DNA of 64,000 nt from NCBI GenBank assembly GCA_015680685.1, contig MNCI01001903.1, positions 172,302 to 236,301 of the forward strand, given 5' to 3'. Shown here piece by piece: positions 1,337-33,610 of the stretch (the stretch's first letter is position 1; the number at the start of each line of letters is the position of its first letter). Source of the stretch: Gnetum montanum (lineage: Eukaryota > Plantae > Gnetophyta). A program made the translations under genes and the position numbers. The notes beneath the pieces were generated by a model. That model worked only from the letters and a program-made list of their open reading frames with translations. It was not told the DNA's origin and made no database searches.

Positions 1337-1430
1337 TTTGTTGAAAAAAATTGAAATACATGAAAGACATGATATGATATGAGAGTTTGTTGAAAAAAAT
1401 TGAAATACATGAAAGACATGATATGATATG
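1337..1430. repeat. Perfect 45-bp direct duplication (period 49)
   Basis: TTTGTTGAAAAAAATTGAAATACATGAAAGACATGATATGATATG at 1337-1381 and 1386-1430. Confidence 0.9.
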
Positions 1431-2962
1431 CATTGAAAACATAACATGTCATGAATAAGTGGAACTTAGGTCAAGTACCTTAGTGCAAAATCATAATATT
1501 CAAGACAAAATATTGTCTAGTGCTATTTCAAATGCTTAATTGTGTCAAGTGATGCTATTAGTTGTCTTCTCTACTCTTGTTTGCAAAGTTGTAGCTTGCT
1601 TACTGTTTGCATTTGCATTGACTAGTCCAAGGTAGCAATTCGCCATGACATAACACGCACCCTATCTATTTTTGGCCTAGAGGCCAACTCGTTTGGTGTG
1701 AGAGGGGGCGGGGGGACTGCCAAGTCAGATGATGAAATTGAAAATAAGATAAAATAAAAAAAAAAGGTTGTTGCCACCATGCACTAAAAAATCCACCACA
1801 AGACTACCCCTGCCTTGGCATGTCCATCAACGTTAGGAAGATGAGCGTGGTTTGGCTTTGGAAAATTCTAATTTCGTTTCAAAAATTTTTGATTCTGTTT
1901 CCATCTCTAATTTCAGTCCATTCAGAAAGACATCAAATATTTCTGACTTCATTTTATTGTATCTGCCCAATTGCTATTTTTCATTTAGTAGGATTACAAA
2001 AATTTTTGATTTCATTTTAGAAATTTTTGATTTCATTTCCACTAAATCAAGTTCATGACGTCTTAAAAAATTTCTATTTTGATTTCCAACCTATCTACAA
2101 CGTTGTCCCATATAAGCTTCCAATGTATTGATTTTTTGTTTTGCGGAGATGCAACACGGCCATCAATTCCAGCCACTATCGGAATAAGAACAGCAAGAAA
2201 AGTAACACCCTAGAGCACCTCCTTCAATTGTAGCCACTATCCGAATCAAGCACACTGGGAAAAGTAATTCCACCAACTGATGGTGACTACATGGTGACAG
2301 ACACAATGCCCTGCTACCAATCTCCCACTCCCCAACTATTTCACTAATATCAAAAAGACACCTACAAAAATAAGCTCTAACGTATGCCTACCTTAGATTT
2401 TTCAGAAAAGTTTATTTGCTTTATTTTTCTACTTGCATCTTGAATTCTTGAGAAATTCTATCTACCATCTTGATGAACAGTGATGATGGTAATTACACAA
2501 CATAATTGAACAAGCAACAACAATAGTACCCTACTTTGCTTCATCTTTATTATTGCTTTCCTTTAATTCTTCCCATCATATTTAATTTGAATCCAGATTA
2601 ATTTATATTACATAAGAAGACTGTATTTTCCATTAAGCACATGCATTTTCCATGTTTGTTTGGGAAAAAGAAAATGTTCAAATCTCATTGTGTTTTTCTT
2701 CAAATATTTCAATTCAAGTGGCCTTTTAAACAAGAAGTATAATTATACCTAAACTTGGTCCAAGGAATGAAAACAAAAAATCATGGTTTTAAAGTGCCAT
2801 TAGGAATTTTGTAAATTCAATCAAAATTGTCATTGTGAATAGTTCCAATTTGTATTCCCAAATGGCTATCCATTAAGAAGGGCTTTGATAAAACTAGTAA
2901 GACTCCTTAATTCCAAATTGCAATGGAACACGTAATCACTTTTTCACATTTTGATTTTTCCT

Positions 2963-3783
2963 GGAAACCAAAACTACGGCCTTGGTCCCATGTTGTGGAG
3001 TAAAGTATTCACAAGTCTCTTTGATTTTAAAGGCAACAAAATTTGTTTGTTAGACTTTTATTTAGATGTTAGGAAATTATAGGCCTAGAATCTATTTGTT
3101 AGCATTTTATTTAGATAGTAGGAATTTATAGGCCTAGTAATGCATACAATTATCATAAAATATTCTACTTCCTTCATGGTTTCATGAATTTGTATGACCA
3201 TCCTACACTGCATTGTGATTTTCAGTTAATTTCATATGGGATTTTAATAGATAAATTTGGTTACTAAAATGTTAGTATTATTAAAATATCAATCTTATTA
3301 TTGATGTGAGAGGTCATGCACAATAAAATATTGTTTCTACAAACAAACTGGCTACATGTAGCATGTTAAACTTGGTTCCACAACAAGTATAATTATACCA
3401 TTTTCATCCACTTTTGATTTATCGTTATGCTTTAGAATTTAGTTTCTTATGGGTTTGCATGTGTACTTGGAATATTATATTTAATTTTTTGGATGAATAA
3501 ATAGCAAAAAATGATGCAAAGGGTTACATGTGTGGAGATCAAAAATTACCATCAAGTGATCATACCTGTTGGCCATAGATACAACTTGGCCAAAAACCAG
3601 ATAACAAATAAGCACAATAGCCTAATAAAATTGAAGGCCTTGAAACCAAACATAAAGCCTTGGTGAGGTGTTGTGAAGTCAAGTATTCACAAGTTTCTTC
3701 TTTAATTTTAAATGACAAAATCTGTTTGTTAGCCTTTTGTTTAGATACTAGGAAGTTATAGGCCTAGTAATGCATCCAATTAT
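2963..3783. repeat. Diverged direct repeats (~2963-3153 and ~3642-3783); first copy has an internal ~50-bp tandem duplication
   Basis: Shared blocks GAAACCAAA, AAGTATTCACAAGT, TGTTTGTTAG, TTATAGGCCTAGTAATGCAT in both copies. Confidence 0.8.
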
Positions 3784-4147
3784 TTTTTTTATAATTATGT
3801 AGTATCAATTTTAATTTATAAGAATAAATGAATACAAATTAGTAGGATTCCCTGCAATAAAAGACACTCTAAAGAAAAAGATAAAGCAACCACTTTTTTA
3901 GAAAACAATGTTGTCTTATTCCATTGCTTACCATATTTTTGTGTTTATAGATGATGAAATCTTTTTATAATTCTTGAATTAAGGTTGATGTTTATAATGT
4001 ATTTCACATTTCATCGTAATTATAAAGAAATAAAAGTAAATATATATATGTATATATACATACATACATACAATCTGAACCTATTATAATTTTACAATGA
4101 CTTTCTCCTTTAATATTACCAATTTCACTCATATTTGTATTTTCTAG

Positions 4148-4557
4148 GATAAAGTGTCAAAAAGGGCAAAACACTCAAGTTGCAATGTTCTTATGGGTCT
4201 ATTTCCTAAATTCATTTAGGTATAGCACTATTTGCCATTAGTTAATAAAATATAATAATATGGTTTCATGGTTTTTGACATCATAACTTTTATTTTAAGC
4301 TTATGGGTATAATTAATATACATGATTATGTTGGCTAGATTTTATAAAATTGGAACAATATGCTAAAAGTGCAATGACTACCATTAAGGTGTCTAGGGCT
4401 GGAGAAGAGTCTATGTACCATAGTTATTTCAACTAGAATATGCTTTACATGGGTTGTTTAACTTATGCTTTCACACCATACTTAGATAAGAATATTAAGC
4501 AAGGTTCATAGTAACCACTCAAATATTTTGAAACTCAAATTCTCAATAACAACCATG
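4148..4557 (+). pseudogene. Decayed exon of an unknown aromatic-rich protein
   Basis: Bounded by ttttctag acceptor and gtatat donor; one frame reads MFLWVYFLNSFRYST...AYGYN*YT...LDFIKLEQYAKS...GCLTYAFTPY with stops but no frameshift. Confidence 0.35.
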
Positions 4558-4698
4558 GTATATATCTCTAACAAAAAACATTATATGCTTTTGATAGGTA
4601 AGAAAATAAATTTAAATTTTATTGGAAGATATTATACTTAAGTAGCATGTTTAAGTATGATGATGATGGAATATTTGCATTTAGGCATTATCAACAAC

Positions 4699-5559
4699 AT
4701 GGATGTTGCTACTACTAGTCCCACTAGGAAAGGCGTAAAACACTCTATTTACAATTCATGGAAGTCATGGTAATGGGTGTGGGTGTGGGCATGGATGTGG
4801 CCAAGGCCAAGGATGGCCATAGATCATAGAAACTAGAAATCTAGAATTGATAAGTATAGAGGAGAGAAGACAATTTAAAAAATGAGAATCAAAACTACAT
4901 GATTGAGAACAACAATAGATTCTACGAAGTTTCGGATTATGATAATGAATTTTTTTATGCATATTTTAAAATTTCAAACTAAATAAATTTTTGCATTTTT
5001 CAGCTCTAATTTTAATGTGTGTAAATCTTATAGTGTTATTTACGTACTTACATTGCAGATATTTTTTTAGGCTACATCAACTTTAAATCCCCTCTCATCA
5101 CCTAGAAACTCATCTTCTAAAATGATTCACATTATTGATAATAATAATGTAAATAACATTATCTAGAGTTAAGACCATTGACTCTTTGAAGATTCATCCT
5201 CCTTTCTCTATGTAGAGATATAGAAAGATTTCAGATGCTAAACCTATCCATAGTAGAATTGCTATTTAGAAAGATTTCATTACTACGGTTAAGAATCACA
5301 TCAAAATTTACCTTCGAAAATTTTTAGCTTGGTTTCTATATAGAAGATGAAAGAGAGAAAAATGTTTGCACAAAGATTATTACATAAACGTCTACATAAT
5401 GGAGACAGAATAAAGAGGCTCATTTCTAGAAAATGTTTTTTTTTTATTTATGGCATAATGGAGAAGAAAGCTGTCATGCAAAGTACAAAAAAGATAGACA
5501 AATATGTTCAATGCAATAATGCTTTGGTTATAATTCATGATATGGTTGACAATTGGTAA
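4699..5559 (+). pseudogene. Decayed GR-repeat/AT-hook protein, possibly related to Ptta/En-Spm TNP-type transposon accessory proteins
   Basis: 4769-4819 reads G-N-G-C-G-C-G-H-G-C-G-Q-G-Q-G-W-P, which is G(RG)nRP after reverting CpG deamination; downstream exon contains GFYIEDEREKNVCTKIIT*TST*WRQNKEAHF, a pattern resembling the F-x-I-x-D-E...WR-x-x-K segment of Ptta-like proteins. Confidence 0.35.
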
Positions 5560-5921
5560 CATTATTAGAGGACTTTTTCTTTGACATGCATAGATATAGT
5601 GTCATTATAGTCGTTGATGTGGTCATGCTGTCATGACTAATAAGTGGTTACATTATTGAAGTTTGGAATGTATTGATATAGTGTTAATGTTGTGCTCGAG
5701 AAGTAGATCAAATCTTTTGTTATTAAATATAGTAATGGTTAAAAAGAAGGAGAAATCATTATGATGATAGTGATGATATGACAAAAATTAGTACATTATG
5801 TTATATTTTTTTTGCATTGGGAAGAACATGTTCTTGTAGCTAGTCCTCTCAATAGATTATAAATGGTAACATGCATTTCAGTTAAGTGAATGACATGTGT
5901 TGATAAATCTAAATCAATAGA

Positions 5922-6930
5922 ATGATAAGAATTTGTATTTTCTATGGAAGTAAGTTAGGCAAGCATAATAGATTTGAAAAGATTGCTAAACAAGTTGGAT
6001 TAGAAATGGCAATGTTAGTTGTTTCTAATTTTCAAGGTATGTATAATAAATTTATATGTTTTTGTTTATTTAACTTAGTTTTTTTTTTTTTTGTATGAAG
6101 GTTGGAAGAAATATAGAATTAATATATGAAGGAGGAAGCATTAGGCTAATGGATGTTGTAGCCAACACTATTTTTAGTAGGGGAGGAAATGTTCTTGGGT
6201 AAGATTATGACTTTGGATTATTATTAAGGTATTTTCCTCCTAAACTTATTATTTGATTGTTATTTTTATCTTACATAACAAAGTGGTACCAAAATTTCTT
6301 TCATTTGAGTAGGTACTATAACAATAATAGTCACCTTTTGTTAGTGTAGTATACTTGCACATATCATACTGATAGTTTAAGTATTTTCTTATGATTTTTA
6401 CTACACATAGATCATTAGTGAAATAATCGACAATGTTTATATTATTAATATTATGCATGAGAGGAAAGAAATAATGATAGAATGCTTAGATGTCTTTATT
6501 GCTTTACTAGGTATTTGTTATATTAGTATTTCATTTTGTAATATTTAATGTATTCCATTATAGTTGAAATAATGTTTATTTTCTTATTACTAGGTAGTTT
6601 TGGGACCATGGAAGAAGTTATGGAGGTTATTAGTTGGAGACAACTTGGAATTCATAACAAGGCAATATGTTTGATGATGCTCTAACATTAGGCATAATTT
6701 ATCATCATTAATGTTAAAAATTGGTTAGTAATTTTTCTTATTTATTTTCAATTTGGGTTGTTAAATGTTGAAGGCTATTATGACTTTCTGTTAAAATTTT
6801 TAGATCATGTAGTGAATGATGGTTTTATTAGTAGTCAAGATTGTAATATCTTTTTTTGCAAAGACTTGTCCAAGAAAGTTTATAAGTAAGCTTTTGATAT
6901 GAAAATAGTACCAATAGCTTGGATTTAAAG
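5922..6930 (+). pseudogene. LOG: LONELY GUY cytokinin riboside 5'-monophosphate phosphoribohydrolase, six exons, decayed
   Basis: Exons 5922-6008 (RICIFYGSKLGK), 6101-6198 (VGRNIELIYEGGSIRLM..GGNVLG), 6282-6312 (VVPKFLSFE*), 6411-6510 (MHERKEIM..DVFIALLG), 6594-6664 (SFGTMEEVMEVISWRQLGIHNK), 6752-~6930 (GLLNVEGYYDFLLKFLDHVVNDGFIS). Matches plant LOG motifs and exon order; several splice sites are mutated and there are in-frame stops. Confidence 0.93.
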
Positions 6931-7350
6931 AAAATATTTTGGTTGAAGAAAATTATGGTTGGTTCCAATGGCAACCAAAGCATCCATCGTCCTCACTGGA
7001 AACTAGATTGGAACCATCTAAACCAAAAGTAAGCTAGGCTCTTGCATCAATTAAACTTAATGACTATAAGTAGTTGTGACTATACCTTAAAGATATTAGC
7101 AAAAGGGAATAATTATTCATAAGAAAAAGTGATTATTTTCTTAGTAGTTGGTGTCATTATATTATTGCTAATGAAAAGACTAGTGTATATTTATCAGTAA
7201 TCCTCACAAAAAAGGAAATATGTGATCCTTATTTATTAAGCATATGTAGTATCACATGAAACAAGTGTAAGTATTACAAATAGAAAATAACCATAAAGAG
7301 AAAGGGCAACTCATTTTATTAACATTACAATATAGAATATATGCTAAAGT

Positions 7351-8148
7351 TTATGGATCTTCATCATAATTAGAATCTCCAGCATAAGAACTTGCCAACA
7401 ACACTTGATGGAGTGGATGTTGCAGGTCTTCCAATGTTAGCCCACTGTTAAGTTGAATATTCAATATGCATAAATCATATGTGAAAGGTGAAGTTGTATT
7501 ATCAACCTACACATTGTTTTTTTAAAAGTAACTTATATTCAATTTGTTTGTTGTATACACTACTTGATGGAAAGCAAATCTTGATGGACTACAAGCGACA
7601 GGTCTTCTTTCTATAGTGGAAAATAAGTAATAAATCATGCTTGTCCAACCATACCTGTTTCTGTATATATATTTAAATCTGGGATTTTTATAGAAGAAAT
7701 AATCACTATGATTTGCACCTTGAACAAAAGAGGAAAAATTTTCTATCATCAAATATGGATTATGACCAAAATATTTCCACCATTCAAACCATGCATTGTT
7801 AGGTATGTTAAATGGAACAATATAAATTTCATAATAGAAACATGAATTTCCAAATTTGTAAAATAAACACAGCCACCAATTATTTGTCATGTTGCTTGTG
7901 TTCTAAATTCAAACATATACCTTGTGGTAATAATTTATCAATGAATTGATTTTCTTATATTTATATATTGCATTCTATTGATGCAACTTGGATTCATAGA
8001 CAAATTTTTTTAAAGTAGCTCCATATCATTGAGAGTGAGATTCCATTGCAACTGGTGGCATCCATTCATCTAGATCTCTACTATCACAATTCATTAGTAG
8101 ATGGGAAGATTGCTCTTGCAAGCCTTTTGTAATTAGATATGATCTCAT
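7351..8148 (-). pseudogene. Intronless 266-codon decayed ORF, Trp/Tyr-rich, unknown family
   Basis: ATG at 8148 is in frame with ORF 7522-7890 and with the terminal TAA at 7351 (798 nt, no frameshift); preceded by a ttttgatag acceptor. Confidence 0.6.
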
Positions 8149-9003
8149 TTTATCCCTTTTATAAATCTATCAAAATAAAGCAAAAATACAAAAGTTAAGA
8201 CAGAGAAAATTTATTAATATCGAACTTAAAAGAATTATAAACTTTGATTATGTTTGTAAACAATAGCTATAAAACTAAAAAATCAAAACAAGCATAAGGT
8301 AGATTTTGTGAGATTTTCTATAGTAAAACATGAATTCAAAAGTTAGTATACTCTAATGTTGAGTTCTTCTTTGCAAGAGCCTTCTAGATCTACAACACTT
8401 GAATTATGCTTTTTATTTGTAGAGTGTGTGCGATTAGTATGCATAGTATGGTTATGTCATTAAGTAAAAAAAAAAAAAACAAGATCTTATAGTTGAAGTT
8501 TGACATGTTTTTTTTTTTATTCAGTGGAGGTTATAACCTATTAAGTAAAGTATATGTTAGGTTCATATTATGGTAATGTTATAGAACACTGATGTAACAT
8601 GACAAAGCAATTGTGACATACAACTAGTAGATTTTATCTTCTCATTGAGTGTGGTTCTATAACCATCATATTCTTGGTATGAGTTCACAAAGAGGTGGTT
8701 TGATAATCATTAATGGAAGATTTGATTTGAAAATTTTGAGCATGCTAAGTTGCACAAGAGATATGAATCTACTATTTTAATAATAATGTTGATAGTGGTA
8801 GATTTGGATGTATTAATTGCAAAGTAAAAATTCAACTATACTAACATAAAATAATGGATAAGTGGAACACATACTATGCATGTTGTAAATTGCAGTAAAT
8901 ATTTATGATTTGAAGTTGTTTCTTTGTTATGTGTCTTTTGAAGTTATTGCTAGGATTGTGTATATAAAAGAGTTTCACTTGATTGTAGATGTATCAGAAT
9001 GCC

Positions 9004-10390
9004 ATGGCATTAGCACAACAATATAATGATGGTTTATATAGAGTTCATGTTCTTATTGTTGATCATAATGTTTTATGTTTACTGGCATCAAAAGATATGT
9101 TTGAATCTTGTAATTATAAAGGTATAGTTATGTGTTATTTTGTTAAGCTTATAGTATGAATTTTCTCTTCAAAATGTTTACCATTAAATTTTGTTTACCT
9201 ATTAGTTACAATAATTTGCATTGAGGGGATAAATGCTTTGGATGTATTGAAAAAAGAAGGAAATATATTTAATCTCATTGTTATTGATGAGCACATAGTT
9301 TTTCAACATAGATTCAAAATAGCAAAGTATGTTATAAAAAAATTAAGAATACCTTTAATAAGTAAGTTCTTTGATATGTTGCAAGTTAAGTAATTTGATA
9401 TAGTTATTTGTATATATTTTAATATTCTTTTTATTACATAGTGATATCTATTACTGAAGATAAATATACTATCAACAAAGAAATTATGCTTAAAGCATGT
9501 TAGTGTCTTTAAAAACCTATACTTCTAAAAGATGTGAAAACTATGTAGCAACATATAATCAAACAAAAAATTATTTGAAATATTTTTTTTTGCCAGAAAT
9601 ACAGTGACCAAAAACAAGCAAAAAACACTAGAGAAAAAGTAGTAGGAAGATAAGAGAAAAGATTTAAAATGAATTCTGTGTAGTGAAATTGAATAAAGGT
9701 TTATGAAAAGTGGGAAAATGCTTTGAATATATGGTAATATGTTTTGTTGATTTTATACATATAGTTATTTTTTAAAATTAAGTAATATGATTTTTTAATT
9801 TTGGGTTATTACTAGGTGAGATTTAAATAATACATGAACATGACAGGACTCACCCTACTTATGTAGATGCACAAACATAATTTTTAGGAAAAAATATTAT
9901 AAAAAATAAAGTGTTATAAAAGTACATATTTGTATGTAAGTTCTATAGTTTTAATAAATATAATTACTTGAAATTGTGCAAAAATGTCGCTTTTCATTGA
10001 AGGCAAAAAAGAATTTTCATTCTGATTTTACAAATGTTGATAAAAATAATATTTACCATGAACAAGTAATAGTAGGAAATGTCACCTCTTTGAAGAAATC
10101 ATGTATAAGATTTCATGGAAATTTTTTTGTTGATGCTACATAAAATAGTCATATCAAGTATGACTTATGAAATAGAAATGTTGATCATACTTATCATTTT
10201 TATAGTTATGATGGAAATCAACATTTGTCAAATGTATATATAAATAATAAACAAACATTATATGATGGTGAGGATGCTATACTAGATGTATGTTATGATT
10301 ATTTTATATAAGTTAGGAAAATTAACATAAATTTAGAAGGTATAGATCAATCAAATTTTATAGCCTAATAGTATACAAGAGTTCAGAGAT
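9004..10390 (+). pseudogene. Type-B response regulator (receiver domain + decayed GARP/Myb-like domain), spliced
   Basis: Exon 9004-9121 VHVLIVDHNVLCL..MFESCNYK; exon 9206-9361 ALDVLKKEGNIFNLIVIDEH..LRIPLI; exon 9442-9733 MIS..KPILLKDVKTM*QHIIKQK then KRKR; ~9835 MNMTGLT; ~9981 KCRFSLK. Motif order and intron positions follow ARR1-type genes. 3' end approximate. Confidence 0.85.
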
Positions 10391-10491
10391 CTCTTTGAAA
10401 CTATTGTCCAATATGTGATGCAGATAGGAAGGATGTGTTCTATAGTTGATTTACATCTATCTATTTTGTTCAATCTACCTTGCAACTCTTG

Positions 10492-10537
<46 letters not shown>

Positions 10538-10602
10538 NGGGCTATGGGTGGTGGTAAAAGTGGTACAAGCTTTTATTCCAATGGAACTACACCAAAAGTC
10601 TC

Positions 10603-10706
10603 TTAATTGTTGGAAAATTGTTTAATTGTTTCCTTTGTTTCCTTTGTTGGAAAATTGTTTCCTTTGTTTCCAATGTTGGAAAATTGTTTAATTGTTTCCT
10701 TTGTTG
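10603..10706. repeat. Modular minisatellite
   Basis: Shuffled units TGTTGGAAAAT, TGTTTAAT and TGTTTCCTT. Confidence 0.8.
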
Positions 10707-12133
10707 GCTGGAGTTTTCTTATTTGATGAACATTATATTGCCATTCTTCTGCTTCTCTAAACTCTAATGTAGTGACATAAATTTTGACTCAAATAGCTAC
10801 CAAGAAACATTATTAAGTATTTCTTGAAAAATTTTAAGGTCATTTTCCTACGAAATAGGCATAACTTAAATATATAGTTTATATTTAAATTATCTTACAT
10901 AATTAAAACATGTACTTATTTTAATTTTATTTCACTACTTTCATGTCCCAATAATGTTTTACCCTTCTCATTATGTATTATCATCAAATTTTGTGCAGTA
11001 TCATCCACCACTTTCACACTGAAAAGATATCTATTTCATGAAATATAAGTTATAAATATCAATAATTATTCAAAATATATTGTATTAAATTGTAAATCAA
11101 TATACCCTAATTAACATTAATTTATAAATTTCATGTTTTATGCCATAGGTAATACATTCATATAATATTTTTTATAATACTTCTTTTGAGCTTCCTTCTT
11201 CAGAAGCCTTAACATCTTCGTTGATATGCTAATTATATAGGCAGCTACAATAAAATTAACTTGTAAAAAATATTTCAATTATCTTTATTATATACATTTT
11301 GAAAAAATAAGTTTTTATTTTTTTATGACTTGATATACATTACTAATATGAATAGTTTAAGTCAATTTGCATAATGTGGCTTATTTTTTTTCTCTAGCTA
11401 ATGGATATGAAGATATCAATGTCTTTTTTGATTCATTTATACTTGTATACTTGTCAAAGAAAATAAGTTTAGTAAAATTCAATAATTAACTATTTTATTT
11501 TTAAAATAAAAGTGCTTACCATTCTTGTAATTCTCTTGTTTATGAAATGTTGGAATTGATGATAACACCACTGTCATTAAATGTTGTTACACTTTTTCCA
11601 AAGAAGTCTTTTACATAAACATTGGAAAGCATTACAATTGGAGATGATGTTGTGTCTTTCTCAATCATTCCATAAAGGTTTTCCCCTTCTACAATTGGTA
11701 AGTGTCTCCATAATGTTACAATTGTAACTTATCATTATTACAATCATAATACAAATGTAACTTTAGAGTTGAACAACTTCAACATATGCATATTATAATG
11801 AAATAAGAAATATTTTCTTACCTTGGATCTAATATCTCTAATTATCTTCTTTCAATTATTCGATCATTTATGTCTCTTTTTAATGTATTAATTGCACTTA
11901 TTCCTACTACTATTTCAATTAGTTCTATAAATGTTAAAAAGAAATGTTAGTTATGAAACATATAAAATATATTACTCAATAATTAGCAATTCTAAAAAAA
12001 TACCTAGTTTCTCTTGTGAGTTGATATAAGAGTCCAGATTTAAGAGCTTGATGAAAGTATACTTGTAATCTAGAATTTCCTTGACCATCTCATCTATTTG
12101 GTGGATTTTAGAAGGTCTATTTAATACCATTTT
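10700..12133 (-). pseudogene. RPA70-like ssDNA-binding protein, 3' portion (end of OB-A, OB-B, OB-C), multi-exon
   Basis: Minus-strand exons: MVLNRPSKIHQ..YKYTFIKL; IVVGISAINTLKR..LEILDP; VTLWRHLPIVEGENL..PIVMLSNVYVKDFFGKSVTT..TRELQEW; RYLFSVKVVDDTAQ..KGKTLLG; ENDLKIFQEILNNVSW. These correspond in order to plant RPA1 segments. Confidence 0.85.
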
Positions 12134-12955
12134 TGATGAAGTGGAAAGTTGGGCTACATCGACACATATGTATCAAGATAGTGTCTATCTTTATCTATAT
12201 AAATGCATGTATGCATTACATTTATGTCATTGTTGAGTCAATAGCATAACAAAGTTCTTGCAATTGCTTTCCATAATAGTTAGAATATTTTCTAAGGGCC
12301 TGTAGTAGGAGTCCAGGATTGTATAGATCCTTATTTGAGCACCAATGTACTTGAACACATTGATGTGATGGCAATAAAGATGAGATTCTTGAAATACCTT
12401 ATAGCACTCGGAATAGCTTAATATTTACTTTTATGCACTTTACTATTCATTTAGTTTAAATTCGTGTTCTTAATTAATTAATTAATTAATACTATTAAGC
12501 AATACACCTAAGTATGATTACCTTGAGCATACTATTAACACTTGGTAATCTTAGTAGTGTTATCGCTTAGTAAGTCCAATAGCCTAACACTTGGTAAGCT
12601 AGTAACATCATAACAAGTTCAAGATATGTATAGAAGGTAGGCTTAGAAACTTATGTTAGGAAGTAAACTAAGGCATTAGATAGTTACTTAGATTAGTTTC
12701 CAATTAATTACTTTATTTCATACTTAGGATAATTAGAATTAAATATAAAAATTAATACAAATCATGTGCCTTGCCTCTCACTTAACCATACACCTGCATC
12801 TACACAAGTTAAGCCAAGAAGATGATGATCACGTCTGTAGGTCACTATCTTTACTACTATCATTTGGAGAGTTAAAGTCCATGGAATTCAACTGAATCAC
12901 TAGTGAATGCTTGTGATTCATATGGTTGGGTGCAAGGACTACTCACCACTCATCA
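12134..12955 (+). repeat. E1 5' LTR
   Basis: TGATGAA...CACTCATCA, aligns with 24277-25153, followed by the PBS. Confidence 0.93.
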
Positions 12956-12956
12956 T

Positions 12957-12974
12957 TGGCACTGTTGCTGGGAA
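12957..12974 (+). promoter_or_regulatory. Primer-binding site, tRNA-Asp type
   Basis: TGGCACTGTTGCTGGGAA is a deaminated form of the Athila PBS TGGCGCCGTTGCCGGGGA. Confidence 0.85.
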
Positions 12975-13106
12975 CTTTAGTTAACTAAGTGTGCTACCTA
13001 GAAGAGATAGTGAAATCATTCATAGACATTGTAAAAGGAACCTAACACTAACATCATTAAATGCAAAGAAAATAACAAAAACACACTATTTTTCTCAATC
13101 ATTGAT

Positions 13107-19100: not shown

Positions 19101-19270
19101 GAGTCCTTACATTATCTATGAAATCTTTCCATTTGGGGCCATGATGACCTACCACCTTGATAGCCCAAATAAAAACTTATTAGTCAACACCTAGTAACTA
19201 AAGCCTTTCCATGAACCAAAAGAAACTAGTGGGGTTAATGCCTCACCTCAACATATGGTCAAGCATGCTT
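13107..19270 (+). pseudogene. E1 gag-pol polyprotein remnant
   Basis: Gag core (PQNHLQAFHDACAL ~14160), knuckle CDICQYKHPKGCC, protease KALLDLSSKVNLI ~15765, RT (MPFGLCNAPATFQ ~17020, VFMGDF ~17105), RNase H ~17540-17880, integrase (WGIDFMG ~18370, IAIDYCTKWAEA). Many stops and frameshifts; start approximate. Confidence 0.92.
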
Positions 19271-21212: not shown

Positions 21213-24104
21213 ATGGTGTCAAAAAGAATACTAGAAGAAGAACTATCCCATCCACGGGAGAAGTGGCCATGAGGGGTAAGGTGCCAGTAGCCACAATAGC
21301 CCTAAGAAGGAGAGGTTGAAACACATGCAATGAGACCTTTTTGGGAGGAGGTTGAAGTGGAATCTATCTATTAGATCCCCACAATGAAAATAGACTAATC
21401 CAAAAGACACAAGGTGCTAGGGCCTAGATCAAACTTGGAGGTTACCTTAACTAAGGCTTACTTAAGATAAATTCACACTAAGGAAATTCAAAGTATAGTT
21501 CTTTAAGGACTTAACTTTGGTTCCTTCTTGTACATGACTTCAGAAGAGATAATAACTCAACTGCAAACCTCTTCCATGTTGCCTATCCTCACTTACAATG
21601 GGGAGTGGTACATGGGAGAGATGTACCTCTTTTGGAATAATAGTCAAGAAGATGTTACAATCAAGATCAACGACATCAATGTGTCTTATTTAGTTGAGGC
21701 CATCACTAAGGCCCTTGGGTTGCTAGATACTAGGGTAACTTTGATGAAGATTTCCATGTAGGCGAATCCATAAGTCAAGAAGGAGTGGGTCCATTGATGC
21801 TATAGAGTGAATCATAAGGAGTACGATGCACTCACCAAGGTAGAGAGGGCTTACTTTAAAATTGCAGCCTACTAGCTAAACCCAACCTTCTCTACCTGTG
21901 CGTGTGCTTCTCTAAGCAAAAAGTTCCCAGTCAACCTTCCACAACTCATATTCCTAGAGATTGAGAAAAGATTCAAAGAAAATGAGTATGGGAGAAAGAC
22001 ACTCCTCTTTCCTTTCCACATCATAAAACTTTCAGAATGGGAAAGATAACCCATTACACTAACAATGCACTTCATCATGCTCCTACTACACCTTAGCAGA
22101 AGATGATGAAGGATAAGGCACCTACCAAGTTGCAAGAAGAGGATTTTCCACCACCACCACATACTTAAGAAACAATGTTGGAGGCATGTTCCACAATCAG
22201 GCACATGAAGAAGCTTTGTGTGCAACTCTTGCAATAATAATAAGAAGGATCAAGTGGTTTGGAGTTTGCAATCTATCAATTAGCTTTAAGCCATTTAAAT
22301 AAAGTAACTCAAACAATAAACTGGCTAAAGGAGACTATGTCATTGTTTTCCACATAGAGAATGTAGGCACCCATAAGATTAAATTTGAGTGCTTGAGAAG
22401 TAATGGTATCCATCCTTGGGTAGCAATAATTTCTAGAGATCTCTAGAAATGCTACCACTTTTTCAGTGTGCTTGGAGGAGGGTAAGGGGATGATTGTCCT
22501 AGTGATGCAACATCATGGATAAGAAATAGTGGTGGAGGTGGTGGTTGATCATGTGGCAAAGGCCCTAAATGCTCCTATGGTTGTTGTGCCAGACATTTTT
22601 ATACTTTAAGATGTGTAGACATTTGCAAGAGTAGGTAGTGAGAGGCTAACACAACCCAACATGAGGAGGTGTTAGACCAACTGTTGGAAGCCAAGCAACC
22701 ACTTCTGAAGATCTTTGATCTTTTGGATAACATAACTACTACCAAGTCAAATTTTTTGGACACTAATGATCAGTTCATCATCACCAATGCCCAACTTGAG
22801 GTAGCCACAACTAAAAATCGATGGTTGGCTTCCAAAGTTGCCAAACTAAGAGCTCACTTAGCTAATCCCACTATTCTTAGCCAAGTAGTGACAAGGGATG
22901 AAGCTTTCTTACATATTCAAAACAAACTTAAAGAGGTTGAGAATGTAAAGGAGATGACAATCTTCAACATGTCTTTATCAAAGGCTTTGGCATACAACAC
23001 CAATAAGGACTTATTGCAAGTCCATAAGGAGAACATCACTCTGACCAGGGACATTCACTTCTTGTGAAATGTCAAGGCACAAAAGAATAAAATGGTGGAA
23101 TTTGTGTGATAATAGTAGGATCATCTTGCTAAGGTGAACATGGATTTGAGGAGGTTGGTAGCCAAAAATAAAAATATCTCAATGAAGAAAGTCTATTCCC
23201 TTCACCAAAAAATAAAAATTAAGGTAGTCGCTTGGAAGAACAAGGTCCTAAAATTTGAATATGTTAAAAATCATTACAGGAACTAGGTTGGGCTTCTCAA
23301 GAGGTGAATGAAAAGAGATTCAACTAGCAAAGGTAAAAATGAATGAGGCCCTCCAACAACTCCAACAAATAGGCAATGTATGATAACCAATCTTTGATGG
23401 ATTGAATGTCTACAACAAAACTAAAATTTTCCTAAATGAGTTACAAACTGAAGACATGATAGAGTACATGGAGCTCACCAACCTCTGTTATGCAAACTTG
23501 GCAATATTGACAACATGAAGGCTACATTCAAAGTTGGAAAAAAAATGGCCAACTCATACCTCCTTGACAAGGTTAAGTTCAAGTATCATAAGGACACAAA
23601 GTAAAAGCTAGAAATAGGAAATGTAGAGCTTGAAGTTCTCAGGAGCTAATTCGCATACCAATGATCGATTGCTAAGAACCTGGCCAAAAGGATGAACCAC
23701 TACCATGAATTGCAGACTCTTGTTAGGATGTTTAGTATTGAATGAAAATAATTCACAATTTGGTTTGTCAATGTCAAGGAGCTGCCCCCTACAATGCTTT
23801 GTTCGTGGGACATCCCTATACTAGCCCACATTGATGATGCTGTGTGGACTATGTACAACCCATGAAGCAAGGAGTAGAAGATGAAGGCATTGTTGAATGT
23901 CTTTCACCTTTTGCCAAAAGTAGTAGTTGCAACAGGGCAATCGTAACCATTGCCTCAACCTCAACAATCATCACCACAAGCACCAGGGATTGGAGAAGGT
24001 CCTTTAGCATCCCAGGAGCCTCCACCTGCTGGCACTGTTTGATCTTCTCTTCATCTTTGATTGTTAGAGAAATTCCAACTATCAACTTTTGTAAGGATGT
24101 TTAA
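21213..24104 (+). pseudogene. E1 env-like/ORF2 remnant (plant-transposon domain + long coiled coil)
   Basis: ATG directly after a CAG acceptor; ORFs 21528-21761 and 22669-23067 are homologous to minus-strand ORFs 46199-46582 and 45351-45542 of E2. Confidence 0.75.
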
Positions 24105-24276
24105 TTTTTTTCTCCTAAACATACATTTTTGTAATCATTATAAATCCATACAATAGGGCACTTAAAATTAGTTAGTAAGTTAGTCAATTTGTGGTTCCAT
24201 ACCTTCCCAATTTTGTAAGAAGTTCATTCCTACTTTTGTTCACTTAAGGATGATTTTTCATTCAGCTGTGGGGGCA

Positions 24277-25153
24277 TGATGAACTGTAAAGTTGGGCTAC
24301 GTCAACAAGCATGTATCAATGCATCCCCATTGATGCATCCCTACTAACACATGAGTTGATGCATCGATGCATATGCATTGATGTAGTGTCTATCTTTGCC
24401 TATATAAATCCATGTACCCACTGCATTTATAGCACAATTAAGTCAATAGCATAACAAAGTTGTTGCAATTTCTTTCCATAATAGTTACAATATTTTCTAA
24501 GTACCCACAGTAAGAGTCAAGAATTGTATCGATCTTGATTTGAGCACCAATGTACATGAATACACTGGTGTAACAGCAATAAAGACGAGATTCTTGAAAT
24601 ACTTTGTAGCACTTGGAATAGCTTAATGTTTACTTTTATGCACATTACTATTCATGCACTTTAAATTTATGTTCTTAATTAATTGATTAATTAATATGCT
24701 TAGGTAATATACATAAGTATGACTGCCTTGAGCATACCGTTAACTCTTGGTAATCCCAACAATGTTATCGCTTGGTACATCTAATAGCCTAACACTTGGT
24801 AACCCAATAACATCATAACAAGTTCAGGATGTGTACAAAAGGTGGACCTAGATACTTATGTTAGGAAGTAGACTATGACATTAGATAGTTACTTAGATTA
24901 GTTTCCAATTAATTACTTTATTTCATACTTAGGATAATTAAAATAAAATATAAAAATTAATACAAATCATGTTCCTTGGCTCTCACTTAACCATATACTA
25001 TACAAGTGAAGCCAAGAAGACAATGATCACATCCATAGGTCACTATCTTTACTACTAGCATTTGGAGAGCTAAAGTCCATGGAATTCAACCAAATTGCTA
25101 GTAAATGATTGTGATTCATATGGATGAATGTAGGGACTACTCACTATTCATCG
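24277..25153 (+). repeat. E1 3' LTR
   Basis: Begins TGATGAAC after the PPT; ends ...TATTCATCG (CA mutated to CG). Confidence 0.93.
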
Positions 25154-25770
25154 ATTTCATAATCACATTTTTTTTATTAAATTTTATGTTTTTTCCTTGA
25201 ATTTTTGCTCCATGAATGTGATATACATTCCCTACATGTAAATTATCATTTTCTATCTTTGCATCTTCATTGTAGGCTATAACTTGCATAATAGATTCCT
25301 ATGAAAAGTAATGAGTTAGTAGCTATTAATATTTAAATAAATTGCAATGGACATAGACATAAATAATTGAAATTGGTACCTTAGCATCCATTACTTGATA
25401 AGTGCACTTTTTTACCATCTTTGATATTTCCAAATGGTTTCATACCAGTTTTGTATATTACATGAATTTCGCAAACCAGATTTTTATTGTAATGATCAAG
25501 AATAGATAATGGCACCAAACTAAGTGGAGTAGTAATGAAGTTAATGGACACTGTGTTATTCACATAATATTATTTTTTCTCATAGCATAAATAAATAAAA
25601 ATAATTTATATTAACTAATATTTATTTCAAAATTTTATAATATGGTAAATGAATTAAAAAAAATTGGACCTATTATTATATGTAGAATTAAAAGTGTTTC
25701 TTTCTAACTTTTTTAGATGATTTTCTTCATTTATTTTTTTGGGCTAATTTTGATTTGTTCATTTTTTCAT
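25154..25770 (-). pseudogene. RPA70-like gene, 5' portion (OB-A)
   Basis: LSILDHYNKNLVCEIHVIYKTGMKPFGNIKDGK; next exon ESIMQVIAYNEDAKIENDNLHVGNVYHIHGAKIQGKNIKFN; rejoins across the E1 TSD as D-Y-E-M-V-L-N. Confidence 0.82.
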
Positions 25771-27074: not shown

Positions 27075-28339
27075 AGCATCTAGGGGATTAATTTATAACC
27101 ACCTTAGAAATTTTAACTTTCATAAGAAATTAAAATTAGAGAAATAAATGCTATAGCTGGCAATTGGCCTATCAAATAATTATCTAATAAACTCTCTTTT
27201 ACTTTTCAATGATAACCTTCCCCTTATTCTTTAAATACATATTTAGATTATAATTTAAACTTAAATTATAATTTTATGTCCATTTTAATATATATACATA
27301 TATATTCATACTATAGCTTTGGGCATGGCATCAATTAATTAACCCTTTTCCTTTAAAAATAAAATCACGGTAAATACAAGGACGACGATTTCATGTTTCG
27401 TTATGTGCTTCTTCTTCGTCTTTATCTCCATCATCAACATAATGGCATGTAAATAGTGCAGAAATGGTGTCAATGTGATGAACTTAGAGGTGGTAATGGT
27501 GACACTGTTTTCGGATGTAGCTGCCACATTTTCAGTAGTATCCCAAGCACGTGTTTAGGTCATAGTATTGTTCAGAATTCAACAACTGTACATGCCGCCA
27601 GATCCTTCTCCGCTGGAGCCTGGTAGCCATGCTTCCAGCAGCCATGGTCGCCTACGCCGATTCCATAGCAATTGAAACTACCTTCGTGCATGAGCTACAT
27701 CCGTGGCAATTGCAGCACATGTATACACAGTACTGCCCTTGCCAGTTTGCCACTGAGGATTCTATATGTGTCCATGGCGCTTGCATGGGGAGTGCTTTCT
27801 GATGAGAACCTTCTTCCTCTAGTTGGACTACTGCACAGGCAAAAACACGCTATCCTCCACCTCAATGATGTAGCAAGACAACAGCTTACCTTTCCTCTAT
27901 GACTACAATTCAATTGCAACAAAATGTAGCAGAGTTATTAAAGTGTTGATTATGGTTCTAGTTATTTTCATTTTTATTACTACTTATTATTATTTTTCTG
28001 GTACGTGCATGTGCTTCTTGTGCTTAGGACCAATGCCTTTGAAAATTCTCGAAACCCTCATAAACTCGCAGATGCTGCCCATTGAGCATGAGCTCTTTGT
28101 GTTTCGGGAGTTTTCAGCATGTGCTTGGCGCCCTTGGGGATCCAAAAACTATACGAATGCATGCGGCAGAACACTAATTGCATACAGAGCAATTTGGTTG
28201 CGTGTGTCGATGAATTTAGGCCCAAGTTCAATGGCGATTCTTTAGTGTCCATAAAGTAACGACAGCAGCATCCATTCGAGCTTAAAAGGGTTCAAAACTA
28301 GATTAGAGCCATGTGTTTAACCTAATGTCTCGTGTTGCG

Positions 28340-28495
28340 ATCATGCCAATTGCAAAATTCTCAAATTTGGCAGTAGCATAAATGTTGGACAATAAAGTAT
28401 GGCCACCAGAATCCCTGGGAACCATTTCGGTAGCTAGATTGCAGCAAGGGCACCAAGCTCTAAATTGTTATGCATTTTGTAGGCCTCCAACACTT
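28340..28495 (-). pseudogene. PPR protein E-domain fragment
   Basis: VLEAYKMHNNLELGALAA, frameshift, EMVPRDSGGHTLLSNIYATA, matching the PLS-E consensus LLGAC..HGNVELG..AA...EP..SG.YVLLSNIYA. Confidence 0.7.
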
Positions 28496-29174
28496 CTATC
28501 TTTATTAGTCACATTTGAACAAGATTCAAGTTACCCTTGCATTTTGAACTTTTTGAGACAAAATTTTCAATGCTTGAATCTTGGAATGTGCATAATTTAT
28601 CCTTATTGAAGCTAGAAATAATTTCTACAAATTCTTCAAATTTAGATTTAGTATCTATAAAAATACTTTTTACATCTTTAGATAATTCCTTTTCCACATA
28701 ACATGAAGACAAATTTTCTAAAATTGCCATGGATTCACATCCCTGAAAATTGAGATAGGTGAACTATCTTTGACATCTTTTACTCTATTTGTTGGCTATC
28801 CCATGGATTCAATGTATTTATTATTATTATTATTATTTATATTGAATTTTCTGCACATGTTTTTTTAGGGTGGATAACTCCAAGTAGCGTTAACAAGTTA
28901 TTTAGCATAGGATGAGCATCTTGGTTTAACAAATAGATAACCTAACATCTCATAGTTGTACTTTGACCCTTCTTTGCTTCAACAAGTCTACACACATCAA
29001 AAGAACATGCACATTCTTCTTCATCATCTCTAAGAATATCAACATCATAAAATTTCATATTTCCACCATTCGTTGTTCCAAAAATTCAATGCTTAGATAC
29101 AGAATGGATGATAAATGTAATCTCCTTTCAATAATAAAGTTTGCTCCATTAAATGGTCTTATGTGACGACATGT

Positions 29175-32100
29175 ATGTGTAATATTAATAGCAGCTTTGT
29201 CAAGTGTCATGCCTTATGATTTATATATTGTAAGTGTCCATGCCAGTTTTAATGGTAATTATTTTTTTCAACCAAATTGTAGTGGTATTATTCGAACTAT
29301 TTTTTTCAAAGAAGACATAAAATATGGACTAGTATAGTTTGGAAAATTAATCAAAACTAAATATGGTGGTGTTGGTTGCTTTGTTTCATTGCTATAAAAT
29401 TTATCTATAGTAGTTCAAGTTGTTACATTTACCAAACCATAACAAGTAGATATATTTATTGTCAACATTACTTTAGTCCCAATTTTGATTAATATATCTA
29501 TTTCCAAATCTTCATCATCCATGGATATGTATTAATTAGAACAATTACTAATACTAAGACTTCAACAAACAGGCTTTTCCAAATTATATAACATTTTCTT
29601 GTTGTGTTCATTTAGTTGATCATTTTTTGCAAATAAGTCTATACTATTATCAAAATTTTTTCATTCTTGAATAGACAATTGGTTTTGTCTTCTACTCATT
29701 AGTATTTCCCAATCAGTACTTATTGGTATTCAGGTTCTTACATTTTCTAGTAATTTTTAAAAAATCCTTTGTTATTCTTTAGATTTATTCTACTGTAATA
29801 TTTTATCTAATAAAACAATAAACGTAAACTCATTCCATAAAATGTTTCCAATACATTTAGAGTAATATGGTGCTATATCTCAAACTAGAGATAATTAAGT
29901 TATATCACCTATTAAAGTCATTGACCTACCTCCAAGACTTTCATTACAATAAGGAAATATTTGTCATGGTCTTGCATCTATATTTTCTAATAACCTAGCT
30001 CTAATAAAACTATGCTCATCAAGGAGAATATATTTTATATCTTCAAAATCATTCTACAACTGATGTAAAATAATATTATTAATTTTTTCTTTTCCTTTAA
30101 TAGATAGTTTCAGAATAGCATGAATTGTTTTTGCTTGAATATTAAAAGCTTCAATCCTTGTTGAAGTCATTACAAACAAAGGCATTTTTTAAGGAAATGC
30201 TAAAGTATACATTTCTATCTTAATAGCATGAATTAGAAAAGATTTTCCTATGCTGACACTACCTTCTACTATTAATTTCAATGGTTTTAATGCCTTTTTT
30301 TCACTTTAAATATAATGATTTTTAATAATATTCATCACTTTCTGTTGTTTGTTATTCAATGTTTGTTGATAATTTGTATTAGTTAGCATCATAATAGTAG
30401 TATTGGAATTTTTTAAGGAACTTAGAAATTTTAATGCTCTTTCAATTTCATTTTGATCAATTTTGTTCCATTCATATCAAATGTCTATGTCTCTTCGTTC
30501 TAACATATCTACTTTTGTGTGATTTAAAATTTATGTTGGTTGCAAACTTGATGAAAGTTTCTATTTGTTTTGAAGGTGATTTACATTTTCAATATAAACA
30601 TCTTCTTCATAATCTTCACTAGTTTTGCTTTTATTATTTATTATTTCAATTGTTTGTTCATTTACTTTCCAATTAGCTCTTATTTCTTCTTCCGTTGTTC
30701 CTATTTCTATTTCATATATACGAATGGAACATAAAGCAACATCTGATTTTGATAATACTATAACCACTTTTTAGGATTCTCAATTGGTTTTTCTAAAAAA
30801 TATAGGATAAACTTGAACAATGGCTTCCTTTTGTCTTTGTTGTCATAACTTATTTGACTTTCTGTTTGGATTGCAAATAAATTTTTTTGTTACCTCATAA
30901 AGGTTTAAACCACTCATGTCTATTGGTCTATTTATGTATGCTATGAAAATATCTTTTAAATATGATTCTTCATTATTGGATTCATTTGTAACTATTTGTT
31001 TATATACTTGATTAGACAAATTTAAGTTTACAAAAATTGTACTACATTCTACTAAAGGTAGTTCCAAAAACATATGTGATACTTCTTGTGCTCCTATATC
31101 TCTTTCAATTAATATCTTAGTTATCAACTTTTATAACTTTTTCCAATGTGATCTTCATTGTTCTGTAATTTTATAATTTTTTCTAACATAAAATTATAAG
31201 ATTTAGAAGTTTATTCTACTTTAGTAGCATATTTTGCTATGTGCTTCACAACAGCATGTTTTAACAAAACAAGTTGTCAATCTATGTTAGCTATCCATAT
31301 TTGAAGAATTAGTCTATGATGTTTATTCAATCTATTATCATTTCTTAGCAACTCATATAAAATTTCTTATGACTAACAATTCTTGTATAACAATGAAAAG
31401 GTTTCACGAATAGGCAATGGAACTCTGTATCTACAAAGCATATGTAAATGTAATATTAGAATTTTTTAAAATATTTTTTCAAATAAATTTTTGATACATT
31501 ACCTGCAATATAATTTTTCCATTTTTTAATCGTAAGAAAGTATCCTTTCTACATTTTGAATATCTTTGAATTGAGTTAATTAGTTCTACATAATCTTTGT
31601 GGATATCTTTGGTGAATATTGCTTCTATATCATATGATGATAAGTGACATTATATATATATATATATGCAAAATCAATATCAAATCTAACACAATATCAA
31701 CATTAATAATAATATAATGTACCTATTTGATACCTCAAAAGATGGCATTGAAGTGGCAAATCGAGGATTCCATCCATGTATAAGATCATCTAAGAAATTT
31801 TTTATCTTGTTGACTTCATTTTCATCATACCAATTAATTATGTCTATATTTGGAGCATTTTCTATCCACAAAAAGCCATGTATGTGAGGAGACCCTCAAT
31901 GTTGCCATTCATACCTTGACCAATAGTCAATAACTTTTATGTCTTTCTTCAAACTCTCTTTCATAAAAACTTTGTTACAGTAATACATATACTATGCTAC
32001 AACATGAGGAATTTCAATGACCATTTGTTGTTTACTTTGTTGTAAATCATTTTTTTAAAAACTCTTGTAATATTTTTATGTATGTCAAACCAATGAATAT

Positions 32101-33610
32101 CAGCAGCACTTAATGTGAAAAATATAGTAAAAGATCCAACTTTATTCAACATTGATATTAACTATAAGTGACATTTTGACTAATAAGCTCATGTACCATG
32201 CAAAGTAGAACTAAATCGTATAATTTCATTAGCAAAACTCTTGCTTGAATCCTTACATAATTATTTTTTAGCTCATTGATATGCATTGGCATTTGATTTA
32301 AATTCCTTTTAATGAAAATCAAGGCTATGCTTTAGGCATGATGTATCCTAATCATGTTAAAAATATAGTACCTAAATCTAGGATGTCTTGCAAATCCTCC
32401 ATCTTTATACAACAAAAGATATTTTGCATATTCATGTAATTGAACTTGCTTAGTTCTTAAGTCATAGAAATCACATTTTCTTGTAGGAAAGAAAGTAGGG
32501 AAGGCAATATCAAATAAAATAGGATAAAAATATTCATTTGATGGAGTTTTATCTATTGTTGACCAATTAATGCTTTTTGCAACTTTAATTTTATGTAAGT
32601 GAAGCCAATCTTGAATGAAATCATTCTCTATTTTAGAGTCAATTATATTCATAATTGTAGATGATGTAAGTACACTTTCATCATAAAGTTTTTCATTATC
32701 ATCATTATTTATTATATTTTATTCGATGTTATTTGATTCATCTTCTAATTCATTAATATTAATTATTTGAATTTTATTAGTGAATCTTACATCATCATTT
32801 TTTGAAAGTTCTTCAATACTTTCCAAATCTATTTCAACATCTTAGTAAAACTTATCATTTTAAATTTTAAATTTTAACGCTGCTAGTACTCTTACTTTGT
32901 TAACAACAAAATCATATGTTCCACTGAAATGATCTTTTCTTTGAATAATAATCAATGGTAACTCTTGTAATTTTCAAGGTAGGGTTTTTGTTACCTCTTC
33001 TACATGTTGTGGAAAGCTTATTGTATGACCTTTATATTTTAGTTGACCTTCACAAGCATGTGTAACTTGAATCATGGGATTAAGCCTCGTAATTAACATT
33101 TCTTCAGCTTGGGTTAACACTTGAAGTTCACATGGTTGTTCTCTAGGATCCATATTATTCGATATAGAAAATCGTTTAGGATAGTTATCTTTTTACATCT
33201 TTGACATTTGAATATGTTATTTTTCTTGGTACGTAACATTGAAACTTTTTTTTCATTACATGTTTTACATTCAAATTTATTTGAAATAGTTTGTAGACTA
33301 TTTTGAAATCTTAATTGAGAATTTCTAATATTTTGTTTGTCTTCATATTTAAAATTTTTCAATTTTTTTAAAAGCTTATTTCTCACATGGTTTGGTTGAG
33401 TTCATATAATTTTTTTTCAGTTTTTATAAACTTATTTGATCATTAGATTCTACTAATGTGACATTATTTAGCTTAGTATTTTCTCTTTACATTGGCATAA
33501 ATGGTGAGCTGTCATTAGTGTTAGTTATTATTTTTTGTCATTTTCTTATATTTGATTCGTAAATTCTTTCACATTTTCTTAATGCTTCTAACTCTTCATT
33601 ATTCATACTA
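29175..33610 (-). mobile_element. Helitron2/Helentron-type Rep (HUH)-PIF1 helicase, decayed and 3'-truncated
   Basis: CxxC..CxxC (ORF 33114-33386); DUF6570-like NNMDP..LTQAEEMLITRLNP..GQLKYKGHTISFPQ; AFPTFFP..DGGFARHPRFRYYIFN; Rep motifs FFTLSAAD (~32110), RYEWQH*GSPHIHGFLW (~31890), HIAKYATK (~31230), ERDIGAQE; helicase GSVSIGKS (~30255), LLDEHS, IGDI, PLKLAWTLTIYKS*GMTLDK. Confidence 0.92.

Follow-up and report, generated by a model that had tools for sequence, protein, structure and literature searches.

The 64,000-nucleotide stretch of Gnetum montanum DNA analyzed here (from contig MNCI01001903.1; the whole stretch is called the window below) raises the question of why sequences related to two cytokinin-pathway genes, LOG and a type-B response regulator (RR), lie next to the RPA70-like and Rep-helicase genes of a Helitron-type element. 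A first-pass annotation of the locus described LOG and the RR as two near-complete genes and proposed that they form a selfish module promoting cell division. The reading that we favor, with a modest balance of probability on its side, is that this is a dead, high-copy element of the HLE2/Helitron2 type in which LOG and part of an RR were carried as one contiguous captured passenger piece. The features that bear most directly on this reading are as follows.

5922-7034, plus strand: LOG-like pseudogene of seven exon-like segments, E1 5922-6017, E2 6101-6198, E3 ~6229-6259 (with an in-frame TGA), E4 6411-6510, E5 6594-~6668, E6 ~6752-6886, and E7 ~6918-7029 (from Pfam, the Protein Data Bank (PDB), and junctions read from the DNA)
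9004-~9581, plus strand: RR receiver-domain pseudogene with exons 9004-9121, 9206-9361, and 9442-~9581
9582-10400, plus strand: region past the receiver, in which a domain is not demonstrable
10760-12133, minus strand: RPA70-like gene, 3' part with DBD-B and DBD-C (from Pfam and PDB)
12134-25153, plus strand: long terminal repeat (LTR) retrotransposon labeled Athila/Tat (from paired LTRs, a primer-binding site, and a target-site duplication)
25154-25600, minus strand: probable 5' part of the RPA70-like gene (OB-like pieces 25140-25298 and 25384-25569)
29076-33401, minus strand: decayed Rep-helicase of the HLE2/Helitron2 type, with a Zn-ribbon-like N terminus at 33117-33401, DUF6570 at 32977-33192, Rep at ~32700-31150, and a Pif1-like helicase at ~30512-29076 (from tblastn, Pfam, and phmmer)

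LOG- and Receiver-like Sequences

With LOG and RR searched one exon at a time, the first of the two passenger genes is identified as LOG by matches of two exons to the Pfam family Lysine_decarbox (PF03641; E 4e-7 and 1.7e-6, both over the gathering cut-off) and by matches of four collinear exons to solved LOG structures in the PDB. Among the latter, E2 corresponds to residues 42-74 of LOG3 (2a33; E 0.0035), E4 to residues 83-114 of LOG8 (1ydh; E 0.96), E5 to LOG3/LOG8 residues 109-145 (E 3e-9 for 5ajt, 4e-7 for 1ydh, and 7e-7 for 2a33), and E6 to residues 128-182 of 2a33 (E 3.6e-6); E1, E3, and E7 were recognized by eye, which is also the sole basis for the positions of E1 and E7. All seven exon-like segments are found and introns with GT-AG ends are retained, so that the full exon set reported earlier is there in outline, but the gene is broken by the in-frame TGA in E3 and by decayed splice sites, the E1/E2, E3/E4, and E5/E6 junctions having no usable in-frame splice signals. 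The two glycine-rich nucleotide-binding motifs, which in intact LOG enzymes are PGGxGTxxE and GGGxxGxMG, are both substituted in the window copy, where they read L-G-S-F-G-T-M-E-E and E-G-G-S-I-R-L-M-D. The second of these (EGGSIRLMD) corresponds to GGGSIGLMG in LOG3, and the LGSFGT of the first corresponds to PGGYGT in LOG8.

Two other observations concern the LOG-like sequence. Over E5 (6585-6680), the LOG of Claviceps (5ajt) scores ahead of Arabidopsis LOG8 and LOG3, and Fusarium likewise provides the best relative of the Rep domain discussed below. The Claviceps match is probably due to chance, and a fungal origin of the LOG was considered and rejected, because the three other exons best match plant LOGs and the four residues of fungal type can be put down to A+T-biased decay. 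At the 3' end of LOG, nine oligo-dT RNA reads match just the 78 bp at 6968-7045; all nine share the differences 6971 G>T and 6992 C>T, and their loose ends are clean to the left and to the right, which would fit the transcription of a related exon or fragment at another locus.

The RR-like sequence can be read from a V-L-I-V-D receiver start through a K-P...Q-H-I-I-K end, which resembles the ARR1 segment Y-L-I-K-P-V-R-M-E-A-L-K-N and also the type-B receiver ending. Its two introns (9122-9205 and 9362-9441), read from the DNA, have GT-AG ends, are both in phase 1, and give exact in-frame joins; as in plant ARR genes, the first of them interrupts the codon that comes after C-x-Y-x. The acidic pocket reads D-H-N, as compared with D-D-D in ARR1. 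The best PDB match of exon 2 is to ARR1 residues 45-94 with a non-significant E of 0.78, the receiver has no Pfam match at E<1, and a word-index protein search with the exon-2 piece returned zero candidates, for which length limits and decay may account. Of the 30 best named clusters in the Atlas, 29 belong to Response_reg, and the first is a Streptophyta cluster at 0.92. Judged from its sequence, the receiver domain is therefore probably real, though not formally significant.

Exon 3 of the RR contains three in-frame stops (9501-9503, 9510-9512, and 9546-9548). When the copies in three related species (organisms A, B, and E) are compared at places 9501, 9503, 9505, and 9511, two of the three stops are seen to be sense codons in almost every contig of organisms A and B and in a part or the majority of the organism E contigs. 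Since most other copies read sense, these two stops are minority or private changes of the window copy. Downstream of the receiver, Pfam and PDB searches gave no GARP or Myb match on any plus-strand piece between 9423 and 10415; a doubtful vestige of a GARP start was seen at 10090-10140, by eye only, in a three-frame reading. As far as its sequence can be read, the RR cargo is a receiver-only fragment of a type-B-like gene. With only the receiver readable, three stops within it, and no GARP domain found by Pfam or PDB, neither a near-complete type-B RR with a full exon set nor, by extension, a pair of near-complete genes can be maintained for this locus.

Rep-helicase and RPA70-like Gene

The minus-strand Rep-helicase of the first-pass annotation is borne out: window positions 33311-29076 are collinear with almost entire Rep-helicase proteins of 1400-1840 aa, in local tblastn comparisons with twelve of the relatives found by phmmer (for example, P0039 residues 501-1820, E 1e-97; P0117, E 4e-97), in an alignment that crosses many stops and frameshifts. 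A phmmer search of 1.84 billion representatives with a stop-free piece of 128 aa (32335-32718, minus strand) found 658 proteins at E<=0.001, the top relatives being only 36-45% identical, and a closer copy of the family was not among the matches. The relatives named are from Fusarium oxysporum, which is the best, Ginkgo biloba, Cryptomeria japonica, and the thrips Frankliniella fusca.

The assignment to HLE2 was judged by two proxies, the fusion of DUF6570 to the N terminus of Rep and the identity of the nearest relatives. The DUF6570 match in Pfam is above the cut-off (E 1.3e-15, 58 bits) and lies N-terminal to Rep, whereas the Pfam matches for Helitron_like_N (E 0.004) and Pif1_2B (E 5e-4) are weak. 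In the HELIANO survey (PMC11417382), DUF6570 shares the Rep-helicase frame and is almost exclusive to HLE2, a group that is present in 6 of the 8 land-plant classes sampled, and the FoHeli elements of Fusarium are of the Helitron2 type (PMC5148889). The protein evidence thus supports the earlier label of "Helitron2-type." An Exo_endo_phos (AP-endonuclease) domain, whose absence sets Helitron2 apart from Helentrons, was not found by Pfam on the pieces scanned between 25.9 and 33.4 kb, where a decayed domain could escape detection.

The RPA70-like gene reported on the same strand is also present, as indicated by REPA_OB_2 at 11543-11728 (E 0.0025) and Rep_fac-A_C at 10919-11035 (E 9e-5), both on the minus strand and both short fragments under their gathering scores, and by human RPA70 as the top PDB match (E 0.31). 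However, its DBD-B and DBD-C lie to the left of the LTR element (10.8-11.7 kb), so that only a part of the gene can be on the right of that element. The OB-like pieces on the right give a weak Pfam OB-fold match (E 0.16), and the remainder of that part was read by eye.

The 13-kb LTR insertion that separates these pieces is present as described earlier. Its 5' LTR extends from ~12134-12150 to 12955 and its 3' LTR from ~24357 to 25153, each of ~800 bp; the pair is 85.1% identical (Kimura two-parameter distance 0.170), the primer-binding site is at 12957, just past the 5' LTR, and is presumably of the tRNA-Asp type, and the target-site duplication is ATTTT/ATTTC, with 4 of 5 positions matching. 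Because RPA-like pieces flank it on both sides, the right-hand ones being weak, the retrotransposon sits inside the RPA-like gene region, and from its sequence the RPA70-like gene appears to have been split by the insertion. The position of the insertion also implies that the host element is older than this already-old LTR retrotransposon.

Copy Number, Linkage, and Element Ends

Contigs and reads of the three related species were aligned on window positions 5001-11000 at a likeness of at least 80%, with the following numbers.

Organism A, set X1: 6816 DNA contigs
Organism B, set X2: 7448 DNA contigs
Organism E, set X9: 7205 DNA contigs
Organism A, set X21: 46 oligo-dT RNA reads

Most contigs are 80-95% alike to the window copy. 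Summed depths of hundreds to thousands are seen for each 200-bp bin of 5401-10400 and for 10801-11000. Between these, at 10401-10800, the depth is 85-290, as compared with 470-2400 on either side; the depths on the RR side (10001-10400) and on the RPA side (10801-11000) are similar in organisms A and B. Of the 46 RNA reads, not one reaches a likeness of 95% to this copy, and 43 lie only partly on 5001-11000, so that the window copy appears silent in the one oligo-dT run examined. This result and the stops and frameshifts in the Rep-helicase agree with the earlier statement that this copy is dead.

The same depths bear on whether LOG and RR could simply be single-copy genes of the host, or pseudogenes of such genes at this locus, with a Helitron nearby by chance. 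Their retained introns and tandem arrangement are host-like, but in three species the entire 5.4-11.0 kb occurs in hundreds of repeat copies, and LOG and RR are thus not single-copy; together with the extreme CpG depletion and a G+C content of 27%, this leaves that explanation with next to no chance of being correct. The finding also disposes of single-copy status for LOG and RR, which the first-pass annotation had named as grounds for abandoning its proposal.

The linkage of LOG and RR to the RPA and Rep-helicase genes is a separate matter. The window is A+T-rich and built of decayed nested repeats, with 10 open reading frames of at least 100 aa overlapping 1-36000 and 6 of at least 130 aa overlapping 12000-64000, and the order of its parts was obtained by stop-to-stop translation of both strands. 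From left to right are the LOG-like exons (plus strand, 5.9-7.0 kb), a 126-codon frame (minus, 7525-7902), the RR-like exons (plus, 9.0-9.6 kb), a T42 run with a 29-nt tandem array (10.5-10.7 kb), the RPA70-like pieces (minus, 10.9-11.7 kb), the LTR retrotransposon (12.1-25.2 kb), the OB-like pieces (minus, 25.1-25.6 kb), a G+C-richer block (27.3-28.5 kb), and the broken Rep-helicase (minus, 33.4-29.1 kb). The Rep-helicase and RPA genes are therefore on one strand with RPA downstream, and, after removal of the LTR element, RR and LOG follow within ~0.4-5 kb. This cargo-like adjacency, the similar depth on the two sides of 10.4-10.8 kb in two species, and the equal composition of the blocks (G+C 0.24-0.27 and CpG observed/expected 0.09-0.22 alike over LOG-RR, RPA, and Rep-helicase) provide circumstantial support for physical linkage in one mobile unit, which we infer to be probable.

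Several observations weigh against a single unit with LOG and RR as its cargo. The gene order is seen at one copy only, the contigs (300-400 bp) being too short to bridge LOG, RR, and RPA. The depth over LOG-RR is up to ~2-fold that of the single RPA bin, which implies that the cargo may travel mostly on non-autonomous or different elements, and the low-depth patch at 10401-10800 lies between RR and RPA, where the end of an element might go unnoticed. A search for termini, asymmetric terminal inverted repeats (TIRs), and hairpins found flank inverted matches at chance level only and no G+C-rich hairpin. Finally, RPA is downstream of the Rep-helicase here, whereas in HLE2 elements it is mostly upstream, according to the HELIANO survey (PMC11417382).

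Some of these points favor an alternative in which the LOG-RR block is a high-copy repeat of its own (for instance, a Helitron of the non-autonomous kind, a DNA transposon of the Pack type, or a piece of a retroelement) that merely abuts the RPA and Rep-helicase genes in a nested graveyard. Such an arrangement would fit a window composed of nested, decayed elements, the sharp change in depth at ~5400 and the dip at 10401-10800, the failure to find common termini, and a cargo depth equal to or above that of RPA. On the other hand, in two species the depth to the left of the 10.4-10.8 kb patch resembles that to its right, the base composition is equal across the blocks, and inverted matches flanking 5.4-10.4 kb are at chance level only, so that no TIRs were found around it. 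A separate repeat is a real but distinctly less probable explanation of the block than a captured passenger of the HLE2-type element.

To the left of the LOG-bearing unit, 5001-5400 is occupied by a different and more abundant repeat (summed depth 6000-13900 in the three species), and many contigs leave the window sequence at 5156/5157 and 5261/5262, which suggests that these breaks are stacked insertion boundaries. Just to the right of the Helitron block there is an open frame at 36404-36613 on the minus strand, which resembles the C-terminal part of a copia-type polymerase; its position limits the 5' end of the Helitron to between 33.4 and ~35.8 kb.

Three further segments lie between the principal parts.

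7044-8137, no strand assigned: variable segment with a 126-codon open frame at 7525-7902 on the minus strand (from contig skips and depth)
10496-10707, no strand assigned: T42 run (one N at 10538) and a 29-nt tandem array of 2.9 copies (from TRF)
27300-28470, no strand assigned: G+C-richer block in which CpG is kept, between the helicase end and the RPA start

The first of these includes the minus-strand gene of unspecified function in the first-pass annotation, which is indeed open for 126 codons but has no family match, relatives being found in none of Pfam, the word-index search, and the Atlas, and lies in a region that some copies skip. The contigs concerned skip 7044-7782 or 7504-8137, and at 7401-7800 the depth in organism E (11000-21000) is ~10 times that in organisms A and B; the segment is probably a nested repeat and not a cargo gene. 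The T42 run, which is A42 on the RPA strand, is in the low-depth patch between the 3' ends of RR and RPA, and 10496-10707 may be a small A-tailed retroposon, with its A-tail on the minus strand, or a spot of uncertain assembly. The block at 27300-28470 has a G+C content of 0.42 and a CpG observed/expected ratio of 0.60, as compared with 0.24-0.28 and 0.09-0.22 in its surroundings; neither Pfam nor Rfam gave a match and no clear repeats or termini were seen in it, and it may represent a younger insertion or an unmethylated island.

Elsewhere in the window, the plus-strand AT-hook gene proposed earlier could not be recovered, since Pfam searches on ten pieces of 1.6-5.6 kb were empty, as was a scan for the motif in all six frames of 1-5600, and a scan of 1-36000 with Rfam gave zero family matches. 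A 400-bp repeat at 3-401 recurs inverted at 43263-43658 and 58219-58610 with ~80% identity, with shorter pieces near 41.5, 42.0, 51.5-51.9, and 58.1 kb, and is probably an LTR or belongs to another dispersed repeat family. Positions 56498-56672 are 175 N, an assembly gap.

Possible Capture and Comparison with Known Systems

In the history that we favor, the starting point would be a rolling-circle element of the HLE2 type, having a Rep-helicase with an N-terminal DUF6570, then an RPA70-like gene, and then a downstream passenger region. A single capture of contiguous host DNA would have brought in a whole, intron-containing LOG together with the 5' receiver part of a neighboring type-B-like RR gene, and, before or while at least three related species diverged, the captured piece would have been amplified passively until its copies numbered in the hundreds. 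Decay by methylation-driven C-to-T change would have followed, and the 13-kb LTR retrotransposon would then have inserted in the RPA gene. That capture was at the DNA level is indicated by the GT-AG introns retained in both LOG and RR, and an RR lacking GARP is what the partial capture of a neighboring gene would leave. LOG and RR are in tandem on the same strand, ~2 kb apart, and since some copies skip ~1 kb of the intervening sequence, that stretch has the appearance of a later nested repeat. We infer that the two were acquired by one capture.

Because one contiguous, DNA-level capture suffices, the pairing of LOG and RR can be explained without selection, and this bears directly on the proposed selfish module. 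According to that explanation, the products of master copies would include an active LOG and a receiver protein, which would heighten or redirect cytokinin signaling in cells carrying the element and so favor its replication. The adjacency of two genes from the same pathway is in keeping with this, as are the stop-free condition of most LOG and RR exon-like segments apart from private mutations, the closer approach of most other copies to a canonical RR at 9501-9511, and the fact that the LOG, although far diverged from plant LOGs, is still recognizable. However, both genes are broken and silent in the window copy, the LOG motif residues are altered in it, and the RR has no DNA-binding domain; the copies are 5-20% diverged, which fits neutral decay, and picking exons as stop-free segments biases toward apparent intactness. 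With a single capture accounting for the pairing, and a window copy that appears silent in the RNA run examined and shows no intact frame, a module promoting cell division is not supported, and we give a functional cytokinin module only a slim chance. There is a slightly slimmer one that an intact LOG is expressed from younger or master HLE2 copies, here or in relatives, possibly alongside a receiver-only RR that serves as a decoy in the phosphorelay. If that were so, the transposon would represent a transposon-borne plant-hormone module that raises or rewires host cytokinin for its own replication.

This greater importance would depend on the existence of a cargo copy that is both intact and expressed, of which there is no hint here. 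The locus documents a non-canonical family of the HLE2/Helitron2 type with an RPA gene, present in hundreds of copies in several related plant species, and is of value for annotation in that LOG-like and RR-like repeats of this kind would otherwise be miscalled in these genomes as genes or pseudogenes of the hormone pathway.

When each part is compared with its nearest characterized counterpart, the LOG-like sequence resembles plant LOGs (Arabidopsis LOG3, 2a33, and LOG8, 1ydh) in being collinear over LOG3 residues ~42-182 and in its exon-like blocks and short introns, but differs from them in its substituted motifs, the stop in E3, the loss of several splice sites, its high copy number, and its silence. 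The RR shares with type-B RRs (ARR1; PDB 9h6e and 8xat) a receiver with type-B-like spacing, ARR1 being its best solved relative, but has no GARP DNA-binding domain or C-terminal region, a D-H-N pocket, and three in-frame stops. The Rep-helicase resembles those of HLE2/Helitron2 elements (Bao & Jurka 2013, PMC3627910; FoHeli, PMC5148889; HELIANO, PMC11417382) in its N-terminal DUF6570 and in having Fusarium oxysporum Rep-helicase proteins among its nearest relatives, the endonuclease domain not being seen here, and the presence of an RPA-like accessory gene is a feature of some HLE2 elements. It departs from them in the downstream position of RPA, and the asymmetric TIRs, terminal hairpins, and T-T insertion target of the group could not be demonstrated in this decayed copy.

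Host-gene fragments with introns are carried by Helitrons of maize and Arabidopsis, and the present locus resembles gene capture by plant Helitrons in that acquisition was apparently at the DNA level with introns, in the combination of one whole and one partial gene, and in passenger amplification followed by decay. The HELIANO survey (PMC11417382) records gene capture by Helitron-like elements and the presence of HLE2 in land plants, and its main text does not name Lysine_decarbox (LOG) or Response_reg among stably captured HLE domains; among the papers searched, none ties Helitrons to the capture of LOG. The locus differs from the plant Helitron examples in having an HLE2 carrier, a near-full-length LOG, and cargo at high copy in several species, and it is a new example of the well-known capture of genes by Helitrons, on a less familiar HLE2 carrier.

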